Assembly: GCF_003704095.1 (NCBI RefSeq)
Contig: NW_020846492.1
Span: forward strand, 372,001 to 436,000
DNA: 64,000 bases
Direction of reading: 5' to 3'
From: Pocillopora damicornis
Lineage: Eukaryota
The translations under genes were made by a program, and so were the position numbers. Shown in pieces: positions 33,901 to 58,395 of this stretch. The notes beneath the pieces were generated by a model. The model searched no databases and had not been told where the DNA came from. It saw nothing but the letters and a program-made list of their open reading frames with translations. Within the stretch, counting starts at the first letter, position 1. Each line of letters starts with the position of its first letter.

Positions 33901-36900
33901 TCAAGGACCGTTCCACTTGCCTGACCTCCATTGCAGTTAGATTATCAAAATTCCTGGATTTTTCTTTTAACGTTAAAGTAATGCATAAAACGCTATATTT
34001 TTTTTTACATTTGTACCGCAATATTCATGGCCAATACTCGAGGGAGAGCTCTCGCTTAATCCAAACGGCACGTAGTGTTGGTTAAAGGATTTAAAACCTG
34101 AATTCCTGAATCGACTTGTGGTTTTGAGTTTCACAGCTGCGTTAAAATCAATTATTGCTAAATTGTGTTTTTTGAATGACTTTTTCACCGACAAAGTAGA
34201 CTTGCGGTCGCATACGTTTGACTCTTGATTGTTTTAATGGCTGTGCGTGGGTCTAAAGGGCCTGAAAATACTGATGAAAAATTCCTGTCAAGTATTAACG
34301 AAATGTTATATTTGATATTCTTTGTAGAATTTTGTAAATGTTTTAAATATGTTGTTTGTGGTATGGATGACTAATTCAAACACATTGCTTTTATTTACAT
34401 GTTCACCTCATTCATCGTTATCATAAATACTGATTTAGTATTTTTAAGCAAACTACAGTGGTAATTATTTCAAGGAGATTTGTGACATGATGATGTGTAG
34501 TTTTGAATTAGCATTTAACTCGGTAGATCGTCACGCCACCTGTCACGCGGTATGTCACGCATTCTTTTTACTAAAATCAAAGACCAAATTCATGTTAACC
34601 TTTTAACTTCCACATTAAATTTGTAATTCTCCTTATTGTCAACCATGCAATTCTTATAATGTTGGTTCAGAGAATTGAGTATTGGACCAACTAATAATCT
34701 CCAGTTAATAGTTTTCTTTATTCTCATCACTTATCTGGTTGATATTGTATTGATATTGTAAGGAGAAATTCTGTCTTGGTCACTCACGGGAGTTAAAGGG
34801 TTAAATTAAAAGCAACTGGAGAATATAACAAGACTCTTGAAACAACTCATACTTTGCCTCTTCCGTCGAGATTGAAATTTCTTTTAAATAATTTTCTTTT
34901 CCAAATGTTTACAAACATTTCCTGTTATTTCCCTTTTTCAGCAACGGTCAAGACAGAACAAGTCCACCCGAGGTAGCTTGAATATTTGTTTAAGATTCTT
35001 TAAATGATACAATTTTATCTCATAAAGCAGTAGTATCGTTGTGTAACTGTTCCATTTCCTTAGCCTGTTTGAACCTTTCGGTAAAGTGCAGGAATAAGGA
35101 ACGTTTACGTACAAGTTAAGTAACGTATACTCTGGAATGGAATGGACTGGACTGGACTGGACTGAACCGTACTTAACCGTACTAATACCTCATTCACACT
35201 GGCAAAAAAGTGTTTAGTTAAACCGGATTTAACTGAATGAAAACAAGAAACAGAGAAACGAGGAACCGAATTTTCCATGGGATTCAAGTAGTCCCTTACT
35301 TGTATATTCAATGTGCTGCATTTGAAATCGACAAACATCGGTTCAAGTAGCTTCTATGAAGAAAAAAATCTCAATCGTATTACACAAAACGCCTTCAAAA
35401 AATGTTTAAGCTTTGGTGTGAATGGGGTATATGTTTAAATGAGACAATGAAATAAGGAAAGGCAATTAAAAGTCTATTTTGATTTTTTAGACCAAGAAGT
35501 TAGATTCTACGCGATATGTACCGTTTAAACAATTAGAAGCGACAACTTTGTCTTGTTTAGTATTAGTTTTTACATTTTATGTTAGAGCTTTGAATATCAA
35601 TTTCACTGCATTTCCCACAGTGAATCGAGACTAGAGAAGAGCAGGCTGACGGAAGACGCGCGAAAAAGGACTCACGTGAGAAACGAGACGCGCAGAGGAC
35701 AGGATGCGTGTAGCAAGACTGCTAAAATATCTCCTTCTGACATATAACGCAAGTCTGCTTCTCGTGAAAATACGCTCTAAAAATTTCCACTTTGTTTCAC
35801 TCCTTAGCCAGTCCCAAGGAAGGTCAAGACGGAAAGCCATGATTTAAAAAGCAGCAGCGAGAGCGAAAGCGAAAGCGAGAGTAATGGAGGAAGTGACAGC
35901 GAAAGTGATAATGAAGAAGAGAGGGTTCCTCGAGTGGATACCGTTGAAGTTCTCAACTCACAACTCACAGAGGAGGAGAAACAGTGGGAGCAAGCGGGAA
36001 ATTTCCAACCCAAAAAGCTAAATCTTTCTCTATTTGCTGGGTTTCAACAAGCACCTGCGAATGCAGCAGACAGACCGGCACCAAAGAAGACACAAGGAGC
36101 ATCCCAACCCTCGCAGTATAAAAAGCCACTTGTGAACAATGAAGAAGAGATTCCCGCTCCGGCTGAAGTGAAAGTTCAGGAAACTGAGCCAGAAATGGAG
36201 GACATCAGGTAAATTATTTAAGGTTTTGGGAACAACTCTTGGCGCAAAATCACTTCATTACATTTGCTTACCGTCACGTTTGGTTTGGTTATTTTCTGGT
36301 ACGAAGTAGTTTTACAAGGAATATCAGCGGACACTTGAACCCCTTAGAATGACTTGGATAAAGTTTCTCCTTACAACAGCACCCCCAAATAGCATATTAA
36401 GGCCACAAGAATATAGGAATGATCACCAACTAAATTCTCCTCATCAGCACCTTGGGAAATGTATACAGAAAAGCATAGAGAATATGCAAACTGATTTTAG
36501 GGTGTGAAGGGTTCACTTCAAACACGTGTTTCGTATTTCTCCTTTTCAACTGTGTTACGTTTTCTTGTTGATCAGTTAACCCTTTAACCTCCAAGATCTT
36601 ATTAGTAATTCTCCTTACTGTCTGCCATATAGTTCTTGTGATGTTAGTTTGGAGAATTTGTTATTGGATCGACTAATAATCCCCTAGTTAATGTTTTTCT
36701 TTATTCTCATCACTTTCTGCTTGATATTGTATTGATATTGTAGGGAGAAATTATATCTTGGTCACTCATGGGAGTTAAAGGGTTAAGGAAACTTGCTACC
36801 AACTTATGATTCCCCTTGTAGCTGTTGGGTGTCTTTGTGCTCATTTCCTACTTGCTAAATAATGTATTGATTTTTCAAGAAGACGTTGCATGTTAACCCC

Positions 36901-39900
36901 TCTACCCTAGAAAGTGTCTAGCACTTAATTTCTCTTTACAGTATCACTAATGAATTAAACATTAAGCAAGACTAACAGATGTGATCGCCAACTAAACTAT
37001 CTCACGATTGTTGGACAAATTGTCCTTGTCACTACCCAAAGAAATCCTTTACGTCACACTTGCAACTAATCCATGAAATCGGAAAGACATCGATTGCTGC
37101 ACTTTTCATCCCAGAAATGGAAATATTTTAGAGATATTTTCATGCAATCAATCCTTCACGCCGATCATCATCTGTTCAGAATTCAATTGTGTCTCATGAT
37201 GATGATATGATCTCTGAGTTTTAAATCTATCGACCATACTTCATTTAATTTTCAAATTTTTTTCAAAGAGAAAAACAGCTCATTCAATTTAAGATTTTTT
37301 TTTCTTTGCAGTCCGGTTCTTGAAGTAAAAACAGAGACAGAGGTAAGGTTTCAATGTTATCTTGTGATTATTTTTCTACACCTTAGAATTCAATCGCCTT
37401 AGGATGTTCTGCTGTAGGAAAACGAGTTGAAAGATTTTTTTAACGCACTGGTAAAGTTGGGGGCGAACTTGTTTCACTGCAGGGGGCGAACTCGCAAAGG
37501 GGGCGAACTGGTATCGAGAGACACTTTTTCACACAATATCCCAAACAGATCGAAGTTATTAGAGAGTGAGGATTCGAGAGGGTAATTTAACAGTAATGCA
37601 TTTAAACTCGTCATGAGAGTCTTGCTAATGCTGCAATCATTAACCTTTTGGCGAGATGTACTGGTGAAGGTGAATAGTATGTTTATGAGAGTAAAATATT
37701 AATTAATAAAAGCGCAAGATGCTGCATACAACACAACTATTAGCTTAAAATCTGCGCAACAGCACTGGCTAAATCACATTAATAAACAAATGCAAAACTG
37801 ACTACAAATTGTTCTTACTGCTTTTAACGCATTTAGGAAATATATTCTTTTGTTTTCTTCGTAATGGCAACGAATTACTTAGACGACTGCAACTAATAAA
37901 CGAGCTTTCTAACACACAGTTTACTGGTTTTGTTTTTAAATGTGAGCTTTTTGTTTATTTTAAACACCAGTCTGTTAAAAGTAACTTAAGCTTACGCATG
38001 CGCTGCTGCTGCTTATTGCGTTGTTGTATACCTGGCTTAATTTCTCTTGAGAAAGAAGACAACCATAGCTCTTGGAGAGGAGGGCATTGAGAGCTATCAC
38101 TTTGACTCCAAATACCGGACAAAATATCCAATAAAATTCAAATACCAAATCGAAATAACTCAACCCAAAGGTTCGAAGATTTTAATCTAACTTTATAGTT
38201 TGGACTATTTTAAAAACGATCAAAAAACCATTTAGATTTAAGAAAAAAAAAAAAACCACGGAAACCGCTGCGGATGTCAAAGCCACAAAAGAAGCCACTT
38301 TGAATAGAAAAGATCGAAAAACCGATTTCGAAAATTACCAATATTGAAAACAAAAAAACCAAATGCCCTCCTCTCAGTTCGATAGCTAAACCTCATTTAG
38401 CGGCTAAACTGTATTAATCACTTGTAGCCTCTCTCATCTTCGCTTTACACCTACACGTATGAGGAGGAAAGTGATGACGACGATGACGTTCCCGGTTGGA
38501 GAAAGGTAGAAGAGCAACGAAGACAACAAGAACGAGAGGAAATCGAAAGAGCGAAAGAAGAGGAAAAAAGACGACGGGAACAAGAGGCCATGGAAGAGGA
38601 GTCACAAAAGCAACCTGATTCAAGTGACGATGAGTTTGAAACCAAAGTACGCACAAAGGAAGTCAGAAAGATTAATCCAAATCTGTTGTTTCAGTTCATG
38701 AAAGAGGCAGACAAAGAACCAGAGAGACCCCTGAAATCGTCGAAACCCAAACAGCAACAAATAGATGTATCCAGTGTCTCGTTGTCAGAATCTACACCCG
38801 TTGTCGACAACCCCTCCGAAGACGGCTATGCAGGAGACCAAGAAAGAGAGGTGGAAGATGAGTACGAAGAGAAAGTACGGAGCGGACAAGTAAGAAAGTT
38901 GAAGCTAGTTAACAGTCCTTTTCTTCAATCGAAGGAAACGGAGATTGCTCCTGACTACCGTCGGGATGAGCCCCGTAGCTCTCGAATTATCAAAGACGAG
39001 ATCTACGTAGAGAAAGTTGAACACTCGACTGTCGAGTCTGCGCCAAGAAGAGACTGGGAAGAGGAGGCAGATGAGGTATTCAAGCATGCCGCTGTCCTTA
39101 GCGATCCACATGAACGCGATCATACGTGTTTTGTTAGTACCAAGTAATTGACAAATTTTTGACAAGCGACTTATCAACGCGAACCATACACTAAATTCGT
39201 AAGGCGGCCTTTAGATTACGTATTGCAATCGAAATCACACTGTTCTTTAGTTTAAAAAAATGTACACCTGTGGAGTGATCCGGCTTGCTAATAACAAACA
39301 CAAGACAGTGTAATATTGCTGTTCCGCAATTGCACCATTGAAAATAGTCACGTTTTGTTTGTTCGTTGTTTTCTGTTTCACACTAAAGACCAAACAGCGG
39401 CACCCATGTAACGCCCTATCACCTAACACCTACTGGTGGTTTATAATTTAAGTTCAAAATGCTATGGTCCTTCGTGGGAATTGTTTCAATGATGACGCAA
39501 CTCCCTTATCTGGTATCAATAAATTTAAGTATTGCTTGAAAAATCATTGCAACAGCTGTAAAGTAGACTAACATTAAACCACCGTGGTATGGACCACTAC
39601 TATGAAATATGAGTGCAAAAATATTCCGTACGGAATAGAAGTCGAGTTGGTGTCAGTGAACAAGTTTTGCACATTTTCTTAGACGTGATTCGTTGTTTTT
39701 TTTTTTTGTCATTAGCCTGAAGTCGACAACGTTGCTGGCGCAACTTTGGAGAGTTACGAAGAGGAAAGTGAAGATGATGGTGTTCCTGAATGGCGCAAAA
39801 TGGAAGAAAAACGAAGACAACAAGAGCTGGAGGAAATTGAAAGGGCCAGATTAGAAGAGCAAAGGAGACGAGAACGGGAAGCGCTTGAATCCAATGAACA

Positions 39901-42900
39901 GGAGGATGAAGATTCAATCGATGATGAATTCGAAGCAAAAGTTCGAACCAAGGAGATTCGAAGAATCAATCCTAATTTGCTTGTTCAGTTTATGAACGAG
40001 TCAAAAGAAGAACCCGCAAGTGATAGAAGACCCAAACAGGAAATCGTAAAAACTCAGCACGTGTTGGTGACGGAAACCACGTCCAAGGATGACAGCGATC
40101 ATGAAGATGCTCTGGAAAAAGATGACGAATTTGTCGAGGATGAATACGATCTCAAAGTGAAAAAAGGGCAAGTGAACAAGCTCGTCCTTGACAACAGTCC
40201 TTTCTTGCAAAAGCAAACCAGAAACGAGACACCTGTTTTGCAAACGAAATCAGAACCAAAGACTATTAAAGTACCTAAACAGGCCTTGCAGGATTCTTTT
40301 GTGCGGGAAGAAGAGCTTGTTCAAGTAATTGATGAGAAAGTTGTGGAGTGTCAACCTGACTTGGGTTTCCGTGAAGGAAACGAACACGATGAGTACGAGG
40401 TAAAAGTTAAATCCAAACTTGTTAAGAGGTTAAGTCATGACCAGTTCCATTTTCTCCGCAAGCAAGAAGAAGAGGAGCGTAAAAGGCTTCAAGAAGAGGA
40501 GCGACGTCGAATAGAACGCGAGGAACGCGAATTACTTAAAAAAGAGGAAGAGCGCAGAAGAAGGCTAGAGGCTGAAGCCCGTGCTAGAGAAGAAGAGAGG
40601 ATTCGCAAAGAAGAGGAAATCAGAAGGCAGGAAGAAGAAGCGAAAGCTCGTAAAGAGGAAGAAAACAGGCGTCGGCGTGAAGAGGCTGAACGAGTTAGAA
40701 AGGAGGAGGAAGAACGGTTACGAAGAGAAGAAGAAGAGGAGCAGATGCGCATGGAGGAAATGCGGAGGCAAAAGGAAGCAGCTAAAAAGAAATTTCAGAC
40801 CGGAATTTTTGATGATGTTCCTGTGACTCGTTCTGAGAAGGATATATACAGCGTGGGGCGTCTTGATGCGAATAAGTTCTTGCAATTCCAGCAAAGTCCT
40901 ACGGAAGAACCAAAACTGAAGTCAAAAGCGCGGTACGACCAGAAGGTAACAAAAGAACCCAAGGTACCAGAAGGTGTTGTAGAAACTGTTCAAGTGGCAT
41001 CTGTTGATTTGATTGAAAGCAGTCCTTATGAGGAAGATGGAGGATCTTTGCTATCCGAAGACGCAGAATACGAAGAAAAACGAAAGAGTGTGGGAAAACT
41101 GGACAAGGAGTGGTACATTTTACAGCAACGAAAGCAAGCGGAAGAAAATGAGCGGCGAGCCAAAGAATTAGAAGAGCAAAGGCTAAGAGAAGAACGTAAT
41201 GAAATATTCCGGTTTCAGGACGACGATTCCACTCCAGAAGTTGTTGGCACTTTGGAAAAAAGAAGAAGCAAGCTTAGCGCCGACAAGTTTAGTGTTTTTG
41301 AACAGGATGCTGTGGGAGGGAACAGTGGACCCGGAAAAACCCAAAAAGAAGGTTCAATTATGGTTAAAAAGAGGGAAGAAGTTCAATCTGCACCTGCAGA
41401 AATAAAAGAGTATGAAAGTAATGGAAAGATTAATAGAAAGAATTATGACGATGACAATGTTATCATTCTCGGAATGGATGATTCCGAAACAGTCCAACGG
41501 AAAATGCGTCTCCAGCGAGAAAGAGACGAAAAACAACTGCTTCGCCAAGAGGAGGAAAGGAGAAGATTGCTTGCCGAGGAAAGTTTGGACTACCGTGACA
41601 GTGAAACAGAGAGTGATAAACCCAAGAGTGTTGGAAAACTGAATTACCAACAATTCTCTGTGTTCCAGCAGGAAGGACCAGTCGCTCCGATAGCAAAACC
41701 GCGCAAGCAGGACCCGCAAGTGATCCAAGAAGTGGTCAGTGTCAAAAGTCAGGAGGTAGTTGAAAGCTCTCCAGTCGATATGAACGAAGCTTATGCCTGC
41801 CACGGGGGTCCTGCTGAGACGCAAGAAGATGTTGAGTATGAGAAAAAGATCAACGCAGGCCAGAGACTTGATGTGGAAAAGTTCTTGAATGCCAGGTCGC
41901 AGGAGTCAGTAGAGAGAACACAACGTGCTAAACGAATGGCAGAGGAGAGAATGCGTCAGGAGCAGGAAGAGCTGGCTAAGTTAAGATTAGAGGAACAAAG
42001 GCGGATGCAAGCGGAACTAGACGGGGGCTATGAGAAAGAAAGTGATCATATTCAGCCGCTGGAAACCGAAAGTAGGGAATCTATAACCGGCTCCGATTCT
42101 GAAAGGTCACGAAAAGTGTCCATTGAAAGAAAAACGTCGACACCCATGGAACATGAGCCAGAGAGTACAGAAAAAGGTGTTGGTGTTGGTGTTGGTCGTT
42201 TACCAGAGGAACTTCGTTTACAATTTGAGAGTGATAGCAAAAATACAAGTTCTCGACGACAGTCCACTAAAATCAAAGGCTCAAGATCACTGACAGACGA
42301 AGAATCGACAAGGACAAACTCGATTGAGAGTCTTCGCAGTATTTCTGGTGAAAGTATGTCTTCTGGGGCGCGAGAAAAAGACATGAATGGAACCGCTAGT
42401 ATCACTGAAAAATTGTCGTCCTTAGACAGGTAAGTACAATTTAATTTCAAACCTTGTAGTAATATACTGATTTTATTCTTAGTGCTCGACTCACGGTCCA
42501 TTAAGAGCTCATTTGGAAACTTCTGGCGTAACATACCTGTGTGAGATACCGATAAAAATCGCTTAGTTGAGTCGTAATCAGGTTTTTCCAATGCAGAATA
42601 CGCTTGAAACTTTCAGCTTTTACAGAAAATAGTAAACCAAAACTGCTATGATTTGGAGGACATGTTTACCTTCACGAACTACATTTATATACCACGAATG
42701 CTTTCTTTCAGGAGGGAGTCCAATCAGGAAGTTCAAGTGGAAGACAGAACAACAGAGGTGTGTTTTATAAACTTTTTCCACACATTATTTTTATACATTA
42801 CTTTTGGATCTGTCCTCTCGCCAAAAGAAGTAAACTATCTATGAATGAACAGACAACCTAGCTAATTTCCAACCAAGATGACCGGAACGAATGAAAGCTT

Positions 42901-43558
42901 TTTAATAGGATACATAGACGTTTACTTTGTGACATTTTCAAACACGTAAATAGAATATATCACATATTTCAAAAACCACACAGTAATCTTTTTTTAAGTA
43001 AAAAATTCAAAAAAAATTCCAGTCATCGGAACCGTTCCACTGCTATCAGTAGAAGACGTAGTAGAACGGCGCCCAAGCAAAACTACATTTTGTGAGCAAC
43101 TCATGGGCCAGTTCCAAAAGAAAACGAACAGATAAGCATTAGTTTCACGAGAAATAAGTTCAGATGTCGGATTTCGCAAGATTTCGCTACTTTTTGGATG
43201 ATTCATGTTTGCTTATGCCTGGATATAGTTTTGGCTTCGAGTTCCAGTGACACAGTTGTTGAACTATACACCTGCTATGATAAATAATCTTAAGGTTTCC
43301 TGGTTATAGTCGTACTCTCCAGAGGAAAAACCAATTCCTAAGAAACTCAACACAAGTATGTTTGCTGCCTTTGAGAAGAGCGACCGCGGACCAGTACAGC
43401 TTCGGCGTGCGAAGAGCGAGAAGCGTGCCAGACCCAAGAGCATTGGAAACGTGGACTTATTGATATGGCAAGATGACGCTAATCTTTCCCATCCTCCCAC
43501 CGACGTTTCAAGAGGGGGGTCTGGGCGCCAGCCACGACCAAAAAGCATTGCATTTTGA
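24517..43558 (+). CDS. Large (~2265 aa) Glu/Arg/Lys-rich protein: N-terminal plexus/GSE1-like C4 finger, ER/K helices, repeated GKL..F motifs
   Basis: Exons 24517-24823, 29141-30786, 31621-32010, 33451-33785, 34942-34972, 35808-36208, 37312-37342, 38428-39075, 39716-42429, 42712-42757, 43310-43558. All junctions are GT-AG and phase-compatible; total 6798 nt = 2266 codons including stop. The 39075 donor (GAG|gtattc) and the 33451 acceptor are weaker. Confidence 0.8.
28758..28802 (+). ncRNA. Minimal type I hammerhead-ribozyme-like motif in a second Penelope-type repeat
   Basis: tgact-CTGATGA-t-gacttccgctcagtttttc-GAAA-c-GTC-agtca. Stem I tgact/agtca, both core boxes and the GUC triplet are present; stem II is weak. 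Confidence 0.55.
30861..30927 (+). mobile_element. Short family B 3' fragment with 8-bp target-site duplication
   Basis: cctgttca at 30853-30860 and 30928-30935 flanks the shared tail. Confidence 0.7.
34595..34804. mobile_element. Family A MITE
   Basis: ttaaccttttaacttcc ... gggagttaaagggttaa. Confidence 0.85.
35134..35190. repeat. Pentamer microsatellite (ggaat/ggact) grading into aaccgtact
   Basis: ggaatggaatggactggactggactggactgaaccgtacttaaccgtact. Confidence 0.8.
35621..35747 (+). CDS. Candidate alternative terminal exon of the 24517-43558 gene
   Basis: Good acceptor (catttcccacag). Phase 2, matching the donor at 33785. Reads (S)ESRLEKSRLTEDARKRTHVRNETRRGQDACSKTAKISPSDI-stop. Confidence 0.4.
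36576..36786. mobile_element. Family A MITE; relatives at ~36340-36514 and ~36893-37030
   Basis: ttaaccctttaacctcc ... gggagttaaagggttaa. Further decayed copies at ~2409-2612, ~16855-16950, ~25980-26160 and ~44250-44428. Confidence 0.85.
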
Positions 43559-44556
43559 GCAACGAATGTTGGCCAATAATCGATGAAACATATCATGATG
43601 TAGTAATTATACGTTTAATTGTATAGCTATAATAATTGCGATAAACTTTGTGCGAAATTTGAACAATTCGGTTGGTCCGAATGGCGAACGATCCACGTTT
43701 GATTTAATTTCGTTTTGAGAGCTCTTAATATTATGATACAAAAGGTGTAGGGGGGGGAAGGAGGCACATCTCGCTTTAACATGTTCAGTGTACTCCAAGA
43801 CAATTCAATACAACACTTACCCAAGTGCTATTAAAAGCATCTTTTTCACGTGATTAGATGTATGAAACGTCATTTTTCAACAAAAACAGTTTTCATATCG
43901 TTAAGCCAGGGTATGACCGCTGAAAAAAAAGAAAAGAAAACGACAAAAAAAAAATAGTTGACATCATAGCAAAATTTCGGCAAAGGTTAAATATGTTTCC
44001 AGTGTTAAGTTAGTTCCTAATTTTTTACTTAAATTTGTAAGTCAATTTGATTAACCTTTTGTTAATGACCAAGTCGACAAGAAAGGGTTAGAGTTTTATA
44101 GAATGGAACTTTACGATGGGTTGTTGGCTGTCGACATCTTGCGTTACGCATAACTCCAAGTTTACAGAAATGTCGAAGATGTAAAAAATTCGTGGAGGTT
44201 TTTTCATAAGTTTGTAACCAGATAAAACATTAGCACCGAAAAATCACTTTAAATCTTTACTCTTAATATCTGGTTGTTAATTCTCCCCTCTAGCTGCTTC
44301 ACATTTTCTTGTAAATTAGTTACGAGAATTTGGTAAACTTCTACCTGTTTGCTGAATAATGCATGTTTTTTTAATAGTGGGGAGAAGTTTCATATCAGTC
44401 ACTCGTGGAAGTTGACGGGAAGGGTTAATATCCTTTATGAAATCATTATCGTCTTTGTCGGCGTGTGTATCAGTAATGAAAAATGATAAGATATCGTAGA
44501 TAGTTATACGTGTATAAGCTCTGAAGAAATTTAGAACATTTTCAAAATCACTCTTT

Positions 44557-44686
44557 GAGGGCCCATGATTCTAAATGACCCACTGAGGGCCCCATACTTA
44601 AACGAACCCTTCTCATATCACCCGCTAAGAGCCCCATACTTAAGCGAACCTTTTTAGTATCACCCGCAAAGGGTCCACTACTTAGC
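44557..44686. repeat. Short degenerate tandem repeat, ~43-bp unit
   Basis: gccccatacttaaRcgaacc...tatcacccgc twice, plus partial units on either side. Confidence 0.7.
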
Positions 44687-47559
44687 TTTACTCAAAATCC
44701 CCGGTTTTCGCCCAGTCAATATCAAGATCAGAATTCGAAATAATGGTAGATTTTGGTTCAAACAGGAAGACCTATAATATAACAAGGTCGTCAATTGAAA
44801 GATCATTTTAAGAGAAAATTTCAGCTTTACAACAGGCGAACAATACACCCAGAGAAAACAGAGGTAGAAAATCAAAGCTGACCGATTCATATTGTTAAAT
44901 TTTCGCCCGCTAAACAATTCTACAAATTACAGAAACTGTCATTGGTGTTTTCTTTGTAGGACTTGACTTATTTGTAAGTCAATCATTTGAAATAAATAAT
45001 TTAAATTAAGTCTGAGTACTTGTCTTGATTGCAGTGTTATTTGCGGAGTTTTTTTATTTCTACTTTCAGTCGCTCTAGCCTTTCTTTTCTGCGAGATACA
45101 ATTTTCGACGACACAAAAATATGTAAGAATGAACCTTCGAGGTAACTGATGGTTTCACTAACGACCAGTTCGCTAATGTCTCAGGTCGTTTCGCCAACGT
45201 CTTAAAGGTCGTTTTGCTAACGTAGTACAAAACGTTCAGTGAATTCATTGGTAGAACTTGATCGACTTCTAATCGACCGAAAAATCGTAGGGGAAGTCAA
45301 ATAGTTTCAATACAAATTGAAAGTTGATTCCATACATGTAATCACTGTGACTTCAACCAGTCGATCTCAGTCCATTTTCGGCCAAAAGTACACGTATATT
45401 TACGGTACATTTCATTTGTCGCGACTTCGAAGAAAAAAAAACTTTAAAGAGACGTTAGCGCAGTAACCTAGAACGTTAGCGACACAATCCACGAAGTTAA
45501 CGAATGCAATTCACCTTTGGATGGTCTGCATGAACGATCCTTTATTGTTTTAGTAAAGCATGTTTGGTTCACTCCGCGGTCTCCTTGAACGTCCCGGAAA
45601 TTTTAGCACTACTACAAAACGATGTTGTGGTACCCTTTAAATTGGCTTATTCCCGCTCCCCGGTAAAAAGTGGATGCGTGTGATCTCTGCTTTAACCATC
45701 ACGCATGAAATAATTTTCTGGAGGCTACTCAAAGGAATTCTGAACATCCGACCGTAGTCCTCAACTTAATATAATAAAGTACTACGTTTCTAAAAGACGA
45801 TATCTTTGCTGCTAAGAAGCAGACGCTTCCAATACTAAAAACGTGACATGCCATTTGCGGTGAAGTCGTCAGTCGAAGATAATGAAAACTTAAATGTCAT
45901 CTGAAAGTCTTCCGGTGTTCTTTTAAACAATTTACTTTGTGCTCGTTATTTGAATTTACTGGAATTATCGATATCTCCCAAAAGTGCAAATGATATCACT
46001 TGTGTTAACTAAGCATAGATAGTTCGCAATACGTCTTTGTACTCCCAAGGTGACATCTGCGTCACGAAAGTTATAATTATCATGATATCACTAAAAACTC
46101 GGCGGGGACCCATTGCACGGAAGCAATTAGTTCCAGTTCATCCACTTTGTTTTATAGTGACCCCAGTTGCTTATGTCTCTGATTTCATTGATGGCAGTTG
46201 CTAGGGATAAAATCGAAGACCTTGAAGGCAAGATCAATATCAAAATGTTGTGTAAAACCGTGGGAAAAGTATACAATAAGAATGTACAATGATATGAGAG
46301 AAAAGAGAGTACTTTCTTTTACTTATTCACCTGTTTTTCGCTCACCAGGCATGCAGATAATTCTTGAAAGTTCCATAAAGATAGACGAGTGAATGGATTC
46401 AAAATTTCAATAATTAGGTGTTAAAAAGCGGTATAGCTGTGTTTATCACTGATTTAAAAGTAAGGGGTAGTTATATAAGATACAGAATCATTGATCCACA
46501 TTAAATTTTCCTGGAGTCATATAAATCCAAATTTACTACCACCTGGAGGTCTTTAGAAAACTAACTGACAAACGATTAAATACATCAAAAATTTCCAGCT
46601 TGTGCGTGCAAAGGATTAACAAATTGGTAATGTTCGTGCTACAAATTCCGTCGGTTTTCCTTTACTTGGGAATAACCTTCTTGAGAGAAAGCAACTTCAA
46701 AGAAACCGTGGGAAATTGGCCGAGTTAGTCATGGTCGAATGAAGATGTCATTATCCTCAACAAAGAAAGTGATTAGTGCATTTTTTAATGACAATTCCTA
46801 AAAACAGTTCAGGAGAATTCAAACTTTTATCAGCAAAAATAATAGAAAATCGACAAAACAAACGGACAGCAAACGGGTCCATACTGTTTTTAGTTTTTGC
46901 GTTGCGAATCAATTAACAATAGTGGTATCGTTTGTGGGCTGGAAAGTGGAAATTCGGCCAAAGAGGAAAGTGGGATGTGTTAAAACAAGACCGGCTTCAC
47001 GCATGAGGCAGAACCTTCTAGTTGCCATAATTATCTTTGGATCAGTCACACTCCAATAACCTTGTCCACAGTTCGTCCTGTTGTTTTGGGTCGTTGCTAT
47101 ATTACGGTCAGTCTCTTAGACTCGCTCAGATGACTTGGAAAAGTTACTAGGTACAGCTTGTGTCAAGAATCAACATATTATAATCAAGTTGAGCAGTGCG
47201 GTTCGTTCGTTCCATTTTCAAGTCCTCTCCAAGGAAGAAGGTAATATTTTACTTTCCTTTATCTAAAGATCAAGAGAACACTGCATGTCAATAAAGTTGG
47301 CGTAAGGAGTGAGAGGCGAATAAACCTCTTTTAGAGGAGCATACGAAGGGAGACAAGACCCTACCTTAATCGCAACACTAGCTATAAAATAAAATGATTA
47401 ATGTTCTCTACTACAAAAACATAAAAAGCTGCAGTTGTTACATCTTCATTTGAGTGCAGTTTGATAATCACAGAACGTATTTGGAAAAATCTGATAATCT
47501 TTGTGTGTTTACTTCCCCTGATTAATGTTCAGTTTACGGCTTGATCTCCATCAGTTTAT

Positions 47560-47720
47560 TACAAAAATTCTAGAGACTCCGAACTTAGTTAACTCAGTCG
47601 GTTGTCCAACATGTATTTGCTTCTTCACGCTTGGGGAACTCAGGCACTCCATCGAATTCAATCGTGTCTCTAGATTGTTCCACACACGAATGCCTAATGT
47701 ATATTGCAAAATTGTCGAGG
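47560..47720 (-). mobile_element. Possible decayed LINE (CR1/L2-like) ORF2 C-terminal remnant
   Basis: YTLGIRVWNNLETRLNSMECLSSPSVKKQI resembles the G.++WN.L....+....SL..FK..L tail of these elements; short and degenerate. Confidence 0.35.
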
Positions 47721-48947
47721 ATATGTGGCAGGGTGAGAAGGAATATCTATCATCAATTTCAAGCACCTTTTAACGTTATTGTCTTACGGAACTTTCCAGC
47801 AAAACAAACCCCAACCTTTCTTTGTCTATTAAAAAACGTAAGAGTTTACACTGATGAAACAAATAATACGACTGTCTAATTTAAATACAATACACAGTTA
47901 ATTGAAAATAAAATATTTTCGGCTCTTGGAAACGCCACAGATTAGAGAATCGGCTTAACGTTTTTGTGTACGTTTCAGTATTTTTGATTGAGCATGCTTG
48001 AGTTGAACAGTTTGCTTGTGTCAACTCAACTAAACAAAAACATAAAGGTAAATCCATTGTCGGCAATCTCGTTCTTTCGTAAGGAGTCGAGAAAAATCAA
48101 ATAACTGCAAACTGTTTTTTTTTCGGCGTTTGAGACAATAAAACTGTTAGAGTAAAGGCTAATGAGAATCGATATTTCGATAAAAATAATCCTAGGGAAC
48201 GAAGTCTCGGACCAAAATCCAATATACCGATCATTAAGACTTTGGTATTCCTGAACCTTTTCAGAAGACAAGTAGATATATCAAGGGAGTTGCTTGGAAC
48301 TTAAGAATAAGACTTGTGGCAAACGGTAATCGACACATGAAAAATTCTTTCATCCGCTTTTTTTGTACCAAGTTTACTACCTTGAAAGTATTAGAATTAA
48401 TAATATATGTTGTTTCCGATGTTTTTTTTTTTTTTTTTTTTGGGGGGGGGGGGGGGGTTTAATTTATGTTTCAGGGGAAAAAAAACAAAAAAGGAAATCG
48501 CAGGGGTTTTTGCCGTATTCCGTTACTGTGAATGTCATTATTAATAACGCTTATCTTAAAATCGCCAGTTTATGCTAAAAGTTGAGTTGTATCAGGTTGT
48601 GACGCACGATATCTTACGCATCACCTAAAATAGTAAGTTAAGGTGAACAATCGCTCGTTAAACACGTACTACTGGGCGTAACGCCGAAGAAACACTTTTC
48701 TTATTATGGATAACACTAAATAGAAGCAGAGGCAATAAATGCTACCTTATCCACCGTAAAGAGTTCCAACAGCTGACGTTTTGAGCGTTAGCCCTTTGTG
48801 GGAGCGAATGATTTAGTTTTACCAAAGAAAACTTGATGAGTGGTCATAAGCTTTGGTCACAACTTTCTTACACTTTTCCCTCATGGTTTTTCTACCTCAC
48901 ATTGCCTCAGTTCTAGGGACCTTTAACAAGATGGCTAGGGAATACTA

Positions 48948-49403
48948 CAGTCAAACCTGTATTAAGTTGTCACCCGAGAGGAATGGCGGATGACCGCTTA
49001 ATACAGGTGGACTACTTAATGCAGCTTGACCGGCAAATGACTTGTCTGATGTTCGTGCGTAATATTTTTCCAAACAGTCCAAAGAAGAAAGATAATATAC
49101 AGTGCGTTGACGACAGTTGAACTGAAAGTTACTAACATTGATTCCGGGAGATAAACATGGAATAAATTTGACTTAAGAGAATTCTTAATGTTATATGAGA
49201 GGTTCGGCTTTAAGTGATCATTCAATACAGGTGGAAGACAATACAAACAGGTCGTTACGACTCAGTCAAGGGTGACCACGAACACTCAATAAAGGTGACT
49301 GCTAAATAGAGGTGAAAAATACCGGCGTTAAGTGGAACAAAATTACGGGACTTTGACAACCGACCGCTTAATACATGGTGACCGCTTAATACAGATTCGA
49401 CTG
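48948..49403. mobile_element. Tc1/mariner-pogo-type MITE with TA duplication
   Basis: TA|CAGTCAAACCTGTATTAAG ... CTTAATACAGATTCGACTG|TA, with internal repeats of gaccgcttaataca. Confidence 0.8.
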
Positions 49404-49717
49404 TAGTATGTCACAATTGTTTCCGTATCAATTAAAAATATAATTAACCTATTGGCCCGGCAGGCTAGAAACCACTATATATCAATTGATTTAAGTATTC
49501 ATAGAACAAACTCAGATCAGATCAAACAAGAATTAATTCCTCTAAATCCCCGCACGAGATTTCGCAACGTCCTCTGGGAAATAATCCCACACTCAATCGC
49601 TATATTCTTCACTTTTTACGCAGCACAACAACGAAAATATCTCCGAATTCATCCCATGACGCCGCTTGGTTAGATAACACGAAGGAAACTCTTCCTTCCA
49701 CTTCAAATTGAGAAAAA

Positions 49718-52700
49718 ATGTCACAAATTATCACGAGAAAGGTGTTCACGTGTTCCAGCGCTTCGACACAGCACCCGATCGAAATAACAGGCGAGGAGGG
49801 CACCATCCTAAAACCAGAAACGTTTCCTTCGAGTTACGAAGCAGCAGTTGCAGAAAGTCCACACAGTGAAATAGACCAAGGAGGTGGAATTGCCTTCAAA
49901 ATTCGTGGGAGTAAAGATGCTAATCCAGCATATACAAAACAAAGTTCAACAAAGATCGTTCGGACATTTGTTACGAATGAAGAAGAGAAGAAACAGCTCG
50001 CCAACGAGGCAGCACTGAATATTAAAACAACAGTAAATTCTAATACTGAACAAAGTCTTGCGATATTACAAGAAAATATTCAAACAACGAATAGACACTC
50101 AACCACTGCAGCCAACGAAGACCCTGGAAAACATACCAACGTGGACTCTACTAATATAACAGCTACCAGCAGACGAAGGTCAAAAACGAGTTACACATAC
50201 AGAGTTCATGATGGCATAGCAGTGTTGGAAAATGTAACAAGATACCAGCCTGAAACGCAAACAATCACAAACTTTGCGCGCCAAAATCCAAAACATACAG
50301 AGATATCCAATGTATCCTTTGAAATAAATACAGAAGACCTGGCAACAAACCAAGACCATGACGTTCAAAAACAAAACACCTTCAGAACAAATCTGGCCTT
50401 TCAATCCAAGCCCAAGACGATATTTACGCAAATGGATATGGTCTCTAAATCAGAAAATAGAGCCGTAAGAGAAATATCTGGTAATCGTCATACTGAGGGC
50501 ATTGGCCAACCATCAACAGACGCAGAAAAAAGGAGACAACTAAAATTAACCACCCGAACTACGGCATACCATGCCACAGCACAAAATTCATCCCAAGGAG
50601 AAAGGCAACTTATTGACACCCCCCAAGACACCCAGAAATCACCAACATACTCTTACTCAGTCACAAGCCCAGGCCCTTCTCACAAGATTTTTGGATCAGA
50701 GGTGTACGGAGTAAAATCAATAACACAACCGCAGCACCAAAAAGAGCGTCTCCCATCAACCAATACAAAACAAATAACGACACAGCACCAAACAACAAAT
50801 ATATCTGACTCTGGAAAACTTATAATTCCCAATTTTACTCAATACACTTCAACCAATCAGGTAAAACTATGTGAGCCAACACCAAAGGACAACAATGTCA
50901 AAAGTGACGAAAAAGTAAAAGACCCCAACACTGAGGAGTGGGAAACACAGGTAGTTACTCAGAAAGATGTCCGTTCAGAAAAATCGCTGCCAACAAATAA
51001 GCTCTCAGCATATAAAATGCAACTTCTTCACAACCAAGATACACAGCCCAAGAAAAACCTCGACAAATCCAGCCCTGGAAGACTTGTCATTCCCGACTTT
51101 AATCAAAGTACTTTCACAGCAGAAGTCAAAGAGACCAAGCCATCGCCCAAAGTCGACAAACTCAAAACTGAAGAGTGGAGAACACAGGTAGTTACCTACG
51201 AAGAATTCAGATCAGAACCAACTCTCCAGGCAAACAGGCTCTCAGAAGATAAAATGAAATTTCTTCACAACCAAAATACACAGCCCGAGAAATACCTCGA
51301 CAAATCCAGCCCTGGCAGACTTGTCATTCCCGACTTTAATCAAAGCTCTTTCACCACAGAAGTCAAAGACATAAAGCCATTGCCCAAAGTCGACAAACTC
51401 AAAACTGAAAGGTGGGCAACACAGGTAGTTACTCAGGAAGATGTCAGATCAGAACAACCTCCACAGGCAAATAGACTGTCAGCAGATAAAATGAAATTTC
51501 TTCACAACCAAGATACACAGCCCGAGAAAAACCTCGACAAATCCAGCCCTAGCAGACTTCTCATTCCCGACTTTAATCAAAGCACCTTCACTACAGAGGT
51601 CAAGGAGACTAAGCCATCGCCCAAAGTCGACAAACTCAAAACTGAAGAGTGGGTAACACAGGTAGTTACTCAAGAAGAGATCAGACCAGAACCACCCCTC
51701 CAGGCAAACAGACTGTCAGCAGATAAAATGCAATTTCTTTACAACCAAGATACACAGCCTGAGAAAAACCTCGACAAATCCAGCCCTGGAAGACTTGTCA
51801 TTCCCGACTTTAAACAAAGTACTGTCACCACAGAGGTCAAAGACACTAAACCATCGCCCAAAGTCGAAAAACTCAAAGCCGAAGAGTGGGTAACACAGGT
51901 ACTTACTGAGAAAGAGGTCAGATCAGAGCCACCTCTGCAGGCAAAAAGGCTGTCAGCAAATAAAATGCAATTTCTTCACAACCGAGATACAGAGCCCGAG
52001 AAAATTCTCGACAAATCTGGTCCTGGCAGACTTGTCATTCCCGACTTTAAACAAAGTACTTTCACCACAGAGGTCAAGGAGACTGAGCCATCGCCTAAAG
52101 TCAACAAATTTAAAATTGAAAAGTGGGTAACACAGGTAATTACTCAGGAAGAAGTCAGATCAGAGCCACCTCTCCAGGCAAACAGGCTGTTAGCAGATAA
52201 AATAGAATTTCTTCACAATCAAGATACACAGCCTGAGAAAAAGCTCGACAAATCCAGTCCTGGAAGACTTGTCATTCCCGACTTTAATCAAAGCACCTTT
52301 ACCTCAGAAGTCAAAGAGACTAAGCCATCACCCAACGTCGACAAATTCAAAACTGAGGAGTGGCTAACACAGGTAGTAACTCAGGAAGAGGTCAGATCAG
52401 AACCACCTCTACAGGCAAACAGGCTGTCAGCAGATAAAACGCAATTTCTTCACAATCAAGAAACACAGCCCGAGAAAAAGCTCGACAAATCCAGTCCTGG
52501 AAGACTTGTCATTCCCGACTTTAATCAAAGTACTTCTACCACAGACGTCAAAGAGACTAAGCCATCGCCCAAGGTCGACAAACTCAAAACTGAAGAGTGG
52601 GTATCACAGGTACTTATTCAAGAGGAGATCAGATCAGAACCACCTCTCCAAGCAAACAGGCTGTCGGCAGATAAAATGCAATTTCTTCACAACCAAGCTA

Positions 52701-55700
52701 CACAGCCCGAGAAAATGCTCGACAAATCTAGTCCTGGCAGACTTGTCATTCCCAACTTTAATCAAAGTACTTTCACCGCACAGGTCAAAGAGACTAAGCC
52801 ATCACCCAAAGTCGACAAACTCAAAACTGAAGAGTGGCTAACACAGGTAGTGACTCAGGAAGAAGTCAGATCGGAACCACCTCTCCAAGCAAACAAGCTA
52901 TCAGCGGATAAAATAGAATTTCTTCACAACCAAGATACACAGCCCGAGAAAAAGATCGACAAATCCAGTCCTGGTAGACTTGTTATCCCCGAATTTAGCC
53001 AAAGCACTTTCACCACAGAGGGCATAGAGACTAAGCCATCACCCAAAGTCACCAAACTCAAAACTGAAGAGTGGGTAACACAGGTAGTTACTCAGGAAGA
53101 AGTCAGNNNNNNNNNNNNNNNNNNNNNNNNNNNNNNNNNNNNNNNNNNNNNNNNNNNNNNNNNNNNNNNNNNNNNNNNNNNNNNNNNNNNNNNNNNNNNN
53201 NNNNNNNNNNNNNNNNNNNNNNNNNNNNNNNNNNNNNNNNNNNNNNNNNNNNNNNNNNNNNNNNNNNNNNNNNNNNNNNNNNNNNNNNNNNNNNNNNNNN
53301 NNNNNNNNNNNNNNNNNNNNNNNNNNNNNNNNNNNNNNNNNNNNNNNNNNNNNNNNNNNNNNNNNNNNNNNNNNNNNNNNNNNNNNNNNNNNNNNNNNNN
53401 NNNNNNNNNNNNNNNNNNNNNNNNNNNNNNNNNNNNNNNNNNNNNNNNNNNNNNNNNNNNNNNNNNNNNNNNNNNNNNNNNNNNNNNNNNNNNNNNNNNN
53501 NNNNNNNNNNNNNNNNNNNNNNNNNNNNNNNNNNNNNNNNNNNNNNNNNNNNNNNNNNNNNNNNNNNNNNNNNNNNNNNNNNNNNNNNNNNNNNNNNNNN
53601 NNNNNNNNNNNNNNNNNNNNNNNNNNNNNNNNNNNNNNNNNNNNNNNNNNNNNNNNNNNNNNNAGTCGACAAACTCAAAACTGAAGAGTGGCTAACACAG
53701 GTAGTAACTCAGGAAGAAGTCAGATCAGAACCACCTCTGCAGGCAAACAGGCTGTCAGAAGATAAAAAGCAATTTCTTCTTAACCAAGATACACAGCCCG
53801 AGAAATCATTCGAGACATCTAGCCCTGGAAGACTTGTTATTCCCGACTTTCGTCAAAGCACTTTCACTACAGAGGTCAAAGAGACTACGTTATCGCCCAA
53901 AGTCGACAAACTCAAAAGTGAAGAGTGGGTAACACAAGTGGTTACTCAGGAAAAAGTCAGATCAGAGCCACCTCTCCAAGCAAACAGGCTGTCAGCAGAT
54001 AAAATAGAATTTCTTCACAACCAAGATACACAGCCCGAGAAAACGTTCGAAAAATCTAGCCCTGGTAGACTTGTCATTCCCGAATTTAACCAAAGCACTT
54101 TCTCCAGAGAGACCAATGAGACTAAGCCATCACCCAAAGTCAACAAACTCAAAACTGAAGAGTGGGTAACACAGGTAGTTACTCAGGAAGAAGTCAGATC
54201 AGAACCACCCCTTCTGGCAAACAGGCTGTCCGGAGATAAAATGCAATTTCTTCACAACCAAGATACGCACCCCGAGAAAACGTTCGACAAATCGACCCCT
54301 GGGAAACTTGTCATTCCCGACTTTAATCAAAGCACTTTCACCTCAGAGGTCAAGGAGACTAAGCCATCGTCCAAAGTCGACAAACTCAAAGCTGAAGAGT
54401 GGGTAACTCAAATACTTACTCAAGAGGAGATCAGATCAGAGCCACCACTTCACGCAAACAGGCTCTCAGCAGATAAAATGCAATTTCTGCGCAAAGATGA
54501 TACACAGCCTGACAAAACATTCGAGAAATCTAGCCCTGGAAGACTTGTTATTCCTGACTTTAGTCAAAGCACTTTCACCACAGAGGTCAAAGAGACTAAC
54601 TTATCGCCCAAAGTCGACAAAATCAAAACTGAAGAGTGGGTAACACAAGTGGCTACTCAGGAAAAAGTCAGATCAGAGCCACCTCTCCAAGCAAACAGGC
54701 TACCAGCAGATAAAATGCAATTTCTTCACAACCACGATACACAGACCGAGAAAAAGCTCGACAAATCCAGTCCTGGTAGACTTGTTATTCCCGAATTTAG
54801 CCAAAGCACTTTCACCACAGAGGGCAAAGAGACTAAGACATTGCCCAAAGTCAACAAACTCAAAACTGAAGAGTGGGTAACACAGGTAGTTACTCAGGAA
54901 GAAGTCAGATCAGAACCCCCCCTTCTGGCAAACAGGCTGTCCGGAGATCAAATGCAATTTCTTCACAACCAAGATACACAAGCCGAGAAAAAGTTCAAGA
55001 AATCCAGCCCTGGCAGACTTATCATTCCCGACTTTAATCAAAGCACTTCCACCACAGAAGCCAAAGACACTAAGCNNNNNNNNNNNNNNNNNNNNNNNNN
55101 NNNNNNNNNNNNNNNNNNNNNNNNNNNNNNNNNNNNNNNNNNNNNNNNNNNNNNNNNNNNNNNNNNNNNNNNNNNACCACCTCTGCAGTCCAACAAGCTG
55201 TCAGCAGATAAAATGCAATTTCTTCACAATCAAGATACACAGCCCGAGAAAAAGCTCGATAAATCTAGTCCTGGCAGACTTGTCATTCCCGACTTTAATC
55301 AAAATACTTTCACTGCACAGGTCAAAGAGACTGAGCCATCGCCCAAAGTCGACAAACTCAAAGCCGAAGAGTGGGTAACTCAGGTATTTCCTCAAGAAGA
55401 GATCAGATCAGAGCCACCATTCCACGCAAACAGGCTCTCAGCAGATAAAATGCAATTTCTTCACAAAGATGATACACAGCCTGACAAAATGTTCGAGAAA
55501 TCTAGCCCTGGAAGACTTGTTATTCCTGACTTTAGTCAAAGCACTTTCACCACAGAGATCAAAGAGACTAAGTTATCGCCAAAAGTCGACAAAATCAAAA
55601 GTGAAGAGTGGGTAACACAAGTGGTTACTCAGGATAAAGTCAGATCAGAGGCACCTCTCCAAGCAAACAGGCTAGCAGCAGATAAAATAGAATTTCTTCA

Positions 55701-58395
55701 CAACCAAGATACACAGCCCAAGAAAATGCTGGATAAATTTAGTCCTGGCAGACTTGTCATTCCCGACTTAAATCAAAGCACTTTCACCGCACAGGTCAAT
55801 GAGACTGAGCCATCGCCCAAACTCAAAACTGAAGAGTGGCTAACACAGGTAGTAAGTCAGGAAGAGGTCAGATCAGAACCACCCCTACAGGCAAACAGGC
55901 TGTCAGCAGATAAAATGCAATTTATTCACAACCAAGATACACAGCCCAAGAAAAAGCTCGACAAATCTAGTCCTGGCAGACTTGTTATTCCCGACTTTAA
56001 TCAAAGCACTTTCACCGCACAGGTCAAAGAGACTGAGCCATCGCCTAAAGTCAACAAACTCAAAGCTGAAGAGTGGGTAACTCAGTTAGTTACTAAGGAA
56101 GAGGTCAGATCAGAACCACCCCTTCTGGCAAACAGGCTGTCTGGAGATAAAGTGCAATTTCTTCACAACCAAGATATACAAGCCGAGAAAAAGTTCAAGA
56201 AATCTAGCCCTGGAAGACTTGTCATTCCCGACTTTAATCAAAGCACTTCCACCACAGAAGCCCAACACACTAAGCCATCGCTCAAAGTCGACGACATAAA
56301 AAGTGAAGACTGGGTAACAGAGGTTCTTATTCAGGAAGAAGTCAGATCAGAATCACCTCTGCAGGCAAACAAGCTGTCAGCAGATAAAATGCAATTTCTT
56401 CACAACCAAGATGCACAGCCCGAGAAAAATCTCGAAAAATCCAGCCCTGGGAAACTTGTCATTCCCGACTTTAACCAAAGCACTTTCACTACAGAAGTCA
56501 AAGACAATAAGACATCTCTCAAAGTCCAGAAACTCAAAACTGAAGAGTGGGTAACACAGGTTGTTACCCAGGAAGAAGTCAGATTAGAACCACCTCTCCA
56601 AGCAAACAGGCTCTCAGCAGATAAAATGCAATTCCTTCAATATCAAGATACACAGCCCAAGAATAAGCTTGTCAAATCCAGCCCTCGAAGAGTTATCATT
56701 CCCGACTTTAATCAAAGTACTTTCATCTCAGAGATCAAAGACACTAAGCCATCGCCCGAAGTCGACCTTCTCAAAACTGAAGAGTGGGTAACACAGGTAG
56801 TTACTCAGGAAGAGGTCAGATCAGAACCACCTCCCCAGGCAAACAGGCTGTCAGGAGATAAAATGCAATTTCTTCAAAACCAAGATGCACAGCCCGAGAA
56901 AAAACTCGAAAAATCCAGCCCTGGCAGACTTGTCATTCCCGACTTTAACCAAAGCACTTTCACTACAGAAGTCAAAGACAATAAGACATCGCCCAAAGTC
57001 AAGAAATTCAAAACTGAAGAGTGGGTAACACAGGTTGTTACTCAGGAAGAAGTCAGATCAGAACTACCTCTCCAGGCAAACAGGCTGTCAGCAGATAAAA
57101 CTCAGTTTCTTAACAACCAAGATACGCATCGCGATAAAAAGCTCGACAAATCCAGCCCTGGCAGACTTGTCATTCCCACCTTTAATCAAAGCACTTTCAC
57201 CACAGAGGTCAAAGAGACTAAGCCATCGTCCAAAGTCGACAAACTCAAAACTGAAGAGTGGGTAACACAGGTAGTTACTCAGGAAGAAGTCATATCAGAA
57301 CCACCACTTCAGGCAAACAGGCTGTCAGCAGATAAAATGCAATTTCTTCACAACCAAGATACACAGCCCGAGAAAAAGCTCGACAAATCCAGCCCTGGCA
57401 GACTTGTCATTCCTGACTTTAATCAATGCACTTTCACCACAGAAGTCAAAGACATCAAGCCATCGAAAAATTACTTCATAAAGGATATACATTCTACTAA
57501 CGGTGGGAATGCCTTGTCATCTGAGATGGTTAGGCATATGAAGAGCCCTAAAAATGTCATTGAATTACAAAGTCGTGAATTACCACTTACCCAAAAGAGA
57601 GAGTTAACGGATGAATGGAAAGTGGAGGATAAAGGAAACGAAGATTGGCGATCACAAGCACCACAACCTTTAAAGGAGTCATTGGAAAAACTTAGATCAC
57701 TTTCTAGAACCCAGGAAATGCATTCAATGACAGGATCTGATGTGTTACCGAAAAATTCAAATGTGCCTCTGAGGGGTACTGACAACACCTTCTTCATTCA
57801 GATTCAAGATGCAGCCTTCACAACTGGAAATTACAAAGATGAGCAGGCGATAAGGCATTATCTGACTGAATTACCTGCGGGAAAAACAGGGTTTGTTCGA
57901 TCAAGGGAAACAAACCAAGTTTTAAAGTCAGATAGAGCTCATTCCTCCGACAGCGTTGTAATTCCCGTTGAACCGAAACAAGTTTCTTCTTCTTCTGGAG
58001 TCGTCATACATAACAGTGAGAACTGGATAACTCGCGCAAATACAAGTATATCGCCTGCAGAGAAAGAAAAGATTTTTTTCCATGCCGGTGAGGCACGTCA
58101 GGCTGTAAAATTAGGAGGGGTCTCATCTAGTGGCAGCGCAGTCATTCCCATTGAAATAAAGGACATTTCTTCGTCACCAAAAGTCCAGATACATGATGGA
58201 AAGACGTGGACTACTCGGCAGACCTCAGTTAAGTTGTCAAGAGATGACAGATCCTTTGTAAGTACTGGCGAAACTAAAGAAGTCATAACGTTGGATGGCT
58301 CTTCATCCAGTGGTGTTGTGATTCCAGTGCAAATTTCAAGCGAATCTTTGACTACAAACGTCAAGATATATAGCGGCCAAGTCTACACACCCTGA
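49718..58395 (+). CDS. Giant single-coding-exon tandem-repeat protein (roughly 2900 aa; exact length unknown because of gaps)
   Basis: The two long ORFs of the track are one reading frame broken by the N gap 53107-53663. About 370 aa of T/Q/S-rich N-terminus, >=26 units of 79 aa, then a unique region with three ~60-aa repeats; TGA ends at 58395. Splice acceptor ttcttcactttttacgcag ends at 49623. Confidence 0.85.
50930..57466 (+). repeat. Coding tandem array, 237-bp (79-aa) unit
   Basis: Trp codons recur every 237 nt: 50939, 51176, 51413 ... 53072; 53689 ... 54874; 55372, 55609, then 55837 (9-nt deletion) ... 57259. Consensus TEEWVTQVVTQEEVRSEPPLQANRLSADKMQFLHNQDTQPEKKLDKSSPGRLVIPDFNQSTFTTEVKETKPSPKVDKLK. 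Confidence 0.98.
53107..53663. other. Assembly gap; others at 13794-13999, 18810-18909 and 55076-55175
   Basis: Runs of N. Confidence 1.

Follow-up and report, generated by a model that had tools for sequence, protein, structure and literature searches.

A stony-coral gene encodes a giant protein of tandem 79-residue units with conserved motif spacing

What does a long array of 237-bp repeats in the genome of a reef coral encode, and what might its product do? The question is raised by a stretch of 64,000 nucleotides from Pocillopora damicornis (NCBI RefSeq assembly GCF_003704095.1, contig NW_020846492.1, positions 372,001 to 436,000, forward strand), here called the window, to which coordinates refer unless another contig is named. 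A first-pass annotation, made from the letters alone, had read 49718–58395 as an intronless gene for a giant protein built from at least 26 copies of an unrecognized 79-residue repeat. We found that the array belongs to LOC113678991, a single-copy, spliced and polyadenylated protein-coding gene of P. damicornis. Its product is several thousand residues long and consists of an N-terminal region of about 400 residues, about 50 tandem units of 79 residues and degenerate C-terminal units. Selection keeps three short motifs per unit and their spacing (20/26/33, in a unit of 79 ± 1 residues), whereas the linker sequence, polar and rich in proline, drifts. The repeat family is new but its general kind is familiar, and RefSeq already listed the gene as uncharacterized, with orthologues in stony corals.

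The tandem array is real. Tandem Repeats Finder returned a period of 237 over 50926–53106 (9.2 copies, 87% matches) and 53664–57465 (16 copies, 76% matches), and in each readable segment only a single frame is free of stops (49718–53106, 53665–55075 and 55177–58395, the last ending in TGA); together the segments encode 2,671 residues. We counted 23 full and three partial units in the window, where two gaps of N interrupt the array. This count, like the earlier figure of at least 26, is a lower bound, as close relatives carry 52 to at least 60 units. A hidden Markov model (HMM) of the unit gave 28 matches on the window protein, degenerate end units included. The sole length variant among the units, and the only visible indel, is a 228-bp unit at 55597–55824 that lacks three codons and keeps the frame. 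As assembled, the flanks of gap 1 differ in frame by 2 and stand 617 bp apart in unit register, whereas those of gap 2 show a frame shift of 0 and a register of 498 bp, off by 24 nt. Because neither register is a multiple of 237, the gap lengths are placeholders, and continuity and frame of the array across the gaps are therefore not decidable from the window. The single continuous 8.7-kb open reading frame (ORF) that had been assumed cannot be demonstrated for the same reasons. A cluster look-up identified the RefSeq entry as 'uncharacterized protein', with isoforms X1–X3 of 1,891–2,128 residues. These map exactly onto the window, yet they jump the gaps and adjacent units as pseudo-introns; the three models are assembly-gap artefacts. 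The features of the locus are listed in Table 1.

Table 1 Features of the repeat gene and exons of its upstream neighbour in the window (aa, amino acids; UTR, untranslated region)
Feature	Position	Strand	Evidence
Exon 1, non-coding 5′ UTR, at least 342 nt	46899..47240	+	RNA contigs 46899–47240 and 46989–47238
5′ UTR intron, 2383 nt, GT..AG	47241..49623	+	Joint in three polyA RNA runs
5′ UTR part of exon 2	49624..49717	+	Sequence read; in-frame TGA 49709–49711
Start codon and N-terminal non-repeat region, 403 aa	49718..50926	+	N-terminal blocks conserved in 12 orthologues
Degenerate unit closing the N-terminal region	about 50729–50917	+	Weak unit match, E 0.0015
Array segment 1: nine full 237-bp units and 47 nt of a tenth	50927..53106	+	Tandem Repeats Finder, open frame, unit count
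Assembly gap 1 (N)	53107..53663	.	Frame differs by 2, register 617 bp
Array segment 2: tail of one unit, five full units, one 214-nt partial	53664..55075 (frame from 53665)	+	
Assembly gap 2 (N)	55076..55175	.	Same frame, register 498 bp
Array segment 3: one 183-nt partial and nine full units (one of 228 bp, 55597–55824)	55176..57483 (frame from 55177)	+	
C-terminal 303 aa, degenerate unit copies, ending in the ITLDGSS.G.VVIP.QI block	57484..58392	+	Alignment with five orthologues
Stop codon TGA	58393..58395	+	
Upstream neighbour, exons	29089–30807, 33451–33786, 35808–36209, 38428–39147, 39716–42433, 43310–43555	+	

We compared the units with each other at the level of codons. Pooled over all unit pairs (Nei–Gojobori), the ratio of non-synonymous to synonymous substitution (dN/dS) was 0.36 in the open frame versus 1.07 and 1.88 in the other two, and the third codon position varied most. 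Because the low ratio is found only in the open frame, the array is a protein under purifying selection and not satellite DNA, as the first-pass annotation had proposed. Units of the window share 77–94% of their DNA letters and show signs of multi-unit block duplication.

The gene is also transcribed. Its unique 5′ part was present in six RNA runs, four of which contained 79–90% of the sampled words; the runs are polyA or random-primed metatranscriptomes from two studies, labelled marine or coral metagenome. Contigs from four runs were placed on 44300–50299, and three polyA runs (X1, X2 and X3) carried a GT..AG joint, 47238→49622 (cut +2), with the donor GAAG/GTAATA and the acceptor TTTTTACGCAG/ (slashes mark the cut). 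With an intron in its 5′ UTR the gene is spliced and not intronless, although all of the coding sequence that is readable falls within a single exon. RNA depth was zero over 45900–46299 in all runs placed, and the repeat gene forms a transcript separate from that of the gene upstream. The repeat ORF opens at 49712, and its ATG at 49718 stands just past an in-frame TGA; because this stop directly precedes the start codon, exon 1 is 5′ UTR. The 5′ UTR (46899–47240 plus 49624–49717) measures at least 436 nt and contains four upstream ORFs, all short (18 codons at most), with three in exon 1 and the fourth in exon 2. Beyond the stop codon, the first AATAAA or ATTAAA hexamer is an ATTAAA at 59381. 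The 234-Mb P. damicornis assembly holds the repeat gene at a single locus.

Relatives were sought among 1.84 billion representative proteins by exhaustive phmmer (query, 55177–58392). The search returned 24, and all named relatives belong to Scleractinia: Pocillopora, Desmophyllum, Porites, Acropora and Montipora. As far as sequence likeness is detectable, the family is restricted to stony corals. The near-identical P. verrucosa orthologue (LOC131799867; 4,555 residues) begins and ends with the same residues as the window protein, that of P. meandrina reaches at least 4,968 residues and that of Acropora cervicornis 3,653; the Desmophyllum pertusum orthologue is split into three models (4,323, 1,106 and 252 residues), Porites lobata supplies a further named relative, and the Montipora orthologues carry the automatic name 'titin homolog'. 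Members have 40–71 units of 76–80 residues each. Twelve orthologues share the N-terminal blocks MSQ..TR.V and SYTY..DG[IV]A[IV]L, and an alignment with five shows that the C-terminal ITLDGSS.G.VVIP.QI block is conserved as well. The window protein shares the marks of the family, namely unit anchors at 20/26/33 spacing, the conserved N terminus and degenerate C-terminal units. We searched the literature by accession, locus tag and general terms and found nothing on this family.

Within the family, the nearest neighbour of a unit comes from the same species (84–99% identity) or a congener (90–91% between P. damicornis and P. verrucosa), compared with 65–71% or lower between genera. The arrays have therefore been homogenized or turned over within lineages. 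The motifs, their spacing and a copy number of about 40–70 persist despite this turnover. Some orthologues are built of super-repeats, of 156 residues with two alternating unit types in one (L011, protein P0005) and of about 240 residues in another (P0010); adjacent copies are nearly identical, so this block amplification is very recent.

A logo of 503 units, weighted by protein, resolves each unit into three islands, which correspond to the three conserved spots noted at first reading. Island 1 is E-E-W-[IV]-T-Q-[TV] (W4 95%, T6 87%, Q 79%), island 2 is [KR]-L-S-x-D-K-x-Q-F-L (L25 88%, F32 86%) and island 3 is [ST]-P-G-[RK]-L-V-I-P-D-F-x-Q (P55 91%), followed by P-P/S-P-K-V-x-K. At positions 6–8 the family consensus is T-Q-T (T 87%, Q 79%, then T 48% or V 31%), and units of the window read T-Q-V 21 times and T-Q-T twice. 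The geometry is strict: in 20 proteins from distant corals the distance from one tryptophan to the next was 79 (303 cases) or 80 residues (131), together 434 of 458, and the three inner motif distances were 20–21, 26 and 33 residues in more than 90% of cases. S-P-G-R, a full consensus of the cyclin-dependent kinase type, is found 20 times among the readable residues and is kept in about two-thirds of family units. The basic residues K77, [KR]24 and [RK]51 are spaced 26, 27 and 26 residues apart, each followed by a hydrophobic residue (L, V or I) and then by a W or F 6–8 positions on. This regularity may be the trace of an older module about 26 residues long, of which each unit would contain three. 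The distant relative P0010 (5,768 residues) supports that suggestion, with G-K-L...aromatic modules every 30–40 residues; it also carries P-G-K-L-K-I-D-A-F, parallel to P-G-R-L-V-I-P-D-F of the unit. A word-indexed protein search with P0010 returned no protein other than P0010. The C-terminal 303 residues of the window protein are degenerate units that match the main units of Desmophyllum at 28–30% over about 200 residues.

As the first-pass annotation had it, the repeat belongs to no recognized domain family. Pfam gave no real family match and nothing for a single unit, PDB sequences gave nothing below E 0.2 by segment or unit profile, the ESM Atlas held no usable match for the units, and Rfam found nothing across the whole window. 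Gsf2 (PF11055), the only Pfam family above the cut-off, was rejected: about 38 of 373 profile positions were matched, and the score is summed repeat noise, because no single stretch passes and a single unit gives no match. We also rejected an identity with titin, since Pfam detected no immunoglobulin (Ig) I-set, fibronectin-III or kinase domain in any segment at E ≤ 1. Titin, AHNAK and the coral protein are all giant and repetitive, but the last lacks Ig, fibronectin-III and kinase domains and matches neither PEVK nor AHNAK repeats.

AlphaFold2 was given two units in tandem, together with 48 aligned rows of units drawn from four species, and returned a mean predicted local distance difference test score (pLDDT) of 56 and a predicted template modelling score of 0.12; the sole secondary structure was a seven-residue helix over A-D-K-M-Q-F-L. 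The N-terminal 190 residues reached a pLDDT of 32, with weak β-hairpin tendencies, and neither input produced a confident fold. The protein thus appears, on these predictions, to be disordered. It has neither signal peptide nor membrane segment, as first claimed (the Kyte–Doolittle 19-residue mean peaks at 1.06 and the grand average of hydropathy is −0.94), an isoelectric point of 6.7 and three cysteines in 2,671 residues; judged by sequence it is intracellular in character.

How might such a protein work? The first-pass annotation had suggested a disordered, multivalent intracellular scaffold. Predicted disorder, intracellular character and repeated motifs support that proposal as a design; as a function it goes unsupported. 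The protein would be an extended scaffold that offers about 150 binding motifs at fixed intervals, and its most likely partner would be a periodic polymer, since the linkers vary far more in sequence than the motifs do in their distances. On a cytoskeletal filament it could then act as ruler, tether or cross-linker, built in the manner of nebulin, Xin or nexilin. Nebulin and nebulette are likewise giant chains in which dozens of short modules each bear one conserved motif; these are arranged in super-repeats, and module length is kept far more strictly than linker sequence. The simple repeat of nebulin has about 35 residues, one per actin subunit, and is helical, whereas the coral modules have 79 residues, or three sub-modules of about 26, and are predicted to be disordered. 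Short actin-binding motifs are known of the nexilin type (G-K-L...F-E) and of the Xin/caldesmon type (G-D-V...W-L-F-E). Their pattern, a glycine or basic residue, a hydrophobic residue and an aromatic one 6–8 positions on within a charged non-globular chain, appears to recur in P-G-R-L-V-I-P-D-F, in P0010 and in the upstream neighbour gene.

Given this possible likeness and the rigid spacing between drifting linkers, the protein may be aligned on a periodic polymer, which it would measure, tether or cross-link; we hold this tentatively and give it somewhat less than an even chance. Conserved S-P-G-R and [KR]-L-S sites would be candidate phospho-switches. Both actin binding and regulation by kinases we purely infer. 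A fuller version is distinctly unlikely as a whole: a filament ruler or tether of about 4,500–5,700 residues, new in stony corals, that would keep in step with a cytoskeletal lattice through its basic–hydrophobic–aromatic sub-period (about 26 residues, three to each unit). Such a ruler might have been born from the neighbour gene and might serve a coral-specific cell structure, such as tissue–skeleton anchoring or the contractile fibres of epithelia, controlled by proline-directed phosphorylation of its roughly 50 S-P-G-R sites. Several points weigh against a filament-bound ruler. No nebulin, Xin or calponin repeat was matched in Pfam (E ≤ 1), and our searches linked the units to no repeat that binds actin or microtubules. 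Concerted evolution, rather than the constraint of a lattice, could partly account for the tight spacing, and the AlphaFold2 disorder predictions are compatible with folding upon assembly. The likeness of unit and neighbour is at the level of motifs only (hhalign probability 10%, E 0.003), and the best HMM score between them was 9.0 bits versus 7.6 for the best of 600 shuffles.

Other readings of the same features are weaker. The protein might instead engage a soluble hub protein at many sites, or scaffold a condensate, with the strand W-[IV]-T-Q-[TV] recruiting a small dimer or oligomer in the manner of the TQT strand motif by which LC8 partners are anchored. It would then form a ladder or a phase-separated body and would not coat a filament. 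The family consensus T-Q-[TV] does provide a T-Q-T-type anchor in a chain predicted to be disordered, the alternation of T and V in its last place is the substitution pattern tolerated in LC8 anchors, and the genome contains two intact LC8 genes. The LC8 partners ASCIZ, Nup159 and Chica are, like the coral protein, disordered chains with many T-Q-T-like strand motifs, but they have 4–11 irregular sites as opposed to about 50 even ones with an invariant tryptophan. That tryptophan, at −3, is atypical of LC8 sites, the window protein favours T-Q-V over T-Q-T, and an LC8-type hub would leave the other two motifs and the strict spacing unexplained. A complex prediction with two copies of coral LC8 (L012:1498-1764:-) and two 35-residue unit peptides scored 0.02, which weighs neither way. 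We consider a hub partner unlikely. It is improbable that the units, unfolded alone, assemble into a β-rich fibre with three strands per unit and make the protein a filament or elastic element. The basic–hydrophobic–aromatic patterns at about 26/27/26 residues, the strict conservation of unit length and the weak hairpin tendencies of the N-terminal model would suit such a polymer; AlphaFold2, however, predicts no strands in the units, the chain is highly polar and rich in proline, and nothing else points to assembly.

The apparent restriction to stony corals invites a link to calcification, and biomineral matrices often contain repetitive disordered proteins, so one could imagine a secreted material of skeletal organic matrix, mucus or cnidocyst, exported without a classical signal peptide. 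The N terminus, conserved in all orthologues, has no such peptide, and the protein has no membrane segment, few cysteines and no acidic bias, nor did we find a paper or proteome list that names any orthologue; we regard secretion as very improbable. Practically no chance is left for a functionless minisatellite that expanded and lies in an open frame by accident. Tandem structure, homogenization within lineages and changes in copy number are what a minisatellite would show, but our results contradict one: dN/dS falls to 0.36 in the open frame only, motifs, spacing, both termini and a copy number of about 50–70 are conserved between the two major coral clades, and the gene is transcribed and spliced. 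The probability that remains beyond these readings belongs to something not yet thought of.

Whichever partner the motifs serve, the gene matters chiefly to coral cell biology. Few order-specific intracellular proteins are known in stony corals, and LOC113678991 is large, expressed, single-copy and conserved in both major clades, with an unusually rigid repeat geometry. It therefore offers a practical way into some structure peculiar to coral cells. In addition, it illustrates clearly how natural selection can act on the distances between motifs of a disordered protein. For annotation, the practical points are that the RefSeq models reflect assembly gaps and that the Montipora name 'titin homolog' lacks domain support.

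The upstream neighbour encodes long single-helix-like stretches rich in E, K and R and about a dozen [GK][KR]L...F..F motifs; it has repeated motifs such as S-V-G-K-L-N-Y-Q-Q-F-S-V-F, S-K-L-S-A-D-K-F-S-V-F and K-R-L-S-H-D-Q-F-H-F-L. The last two resemble N-R-L-S-A-D-K-M-Q-F-L of the repeat unit, and unit and neighbour may share an origin; with an hhalign probability this low and an HMM score about equal to that of shuffles, homology was rejected as proven and kept as a lead. The two genes otherwise differ, as the neighbour has many introns, E/K/R-rich helices and a transcript of its own. On another coral contig (L010) the orthologue of the neighbour (47% identity) immediately precedes the repeat gene, and on a third contig (P0095) a matching ORF of 793 residues stands upstream of the repeat gene. 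Pfam found no domain in the neighbour, and the ESM Atlas gave weak leads only (0.79, Tankyrase_bdg_C / DUF4592); a word-indexed protein search with a neighbour exon yielded unnamed ORFs and nothing else.

Between the two genes, RNA contigs cover 44336–45015 at a word depth of 500–900, compared with 9–26 on the repeat gene, and continue upstream into sequence unlike that of the window, the picture expected of a terminal exon joined by splicing. The upstream gene may have its 3′ end here. Positions 44342–44419 hold a dispersed element of about 75 nt found at 40 or more places in the genome (74–80% identity). Farther upstream, an open stretch at 24454–24837 (+) encodes a C-x2-C ... C-x2-C-F-H-H-L-L-R-Q-W finger, and a NOC4-like (CBF/Mak21) gene at 13756–15225 (+) is cut by a gap (13794–13999). 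The NOC4 gene of other corals is found on the opposite strand and downstream of the repeat gene, which implies a rearrangement of this block in Pocillopora. The two dynein light chain LC8 genes are intronless and stand in tandem, 2.6 kb apart, at G000:C787:73554-73805 and 76134-76385 (L012 and L013).

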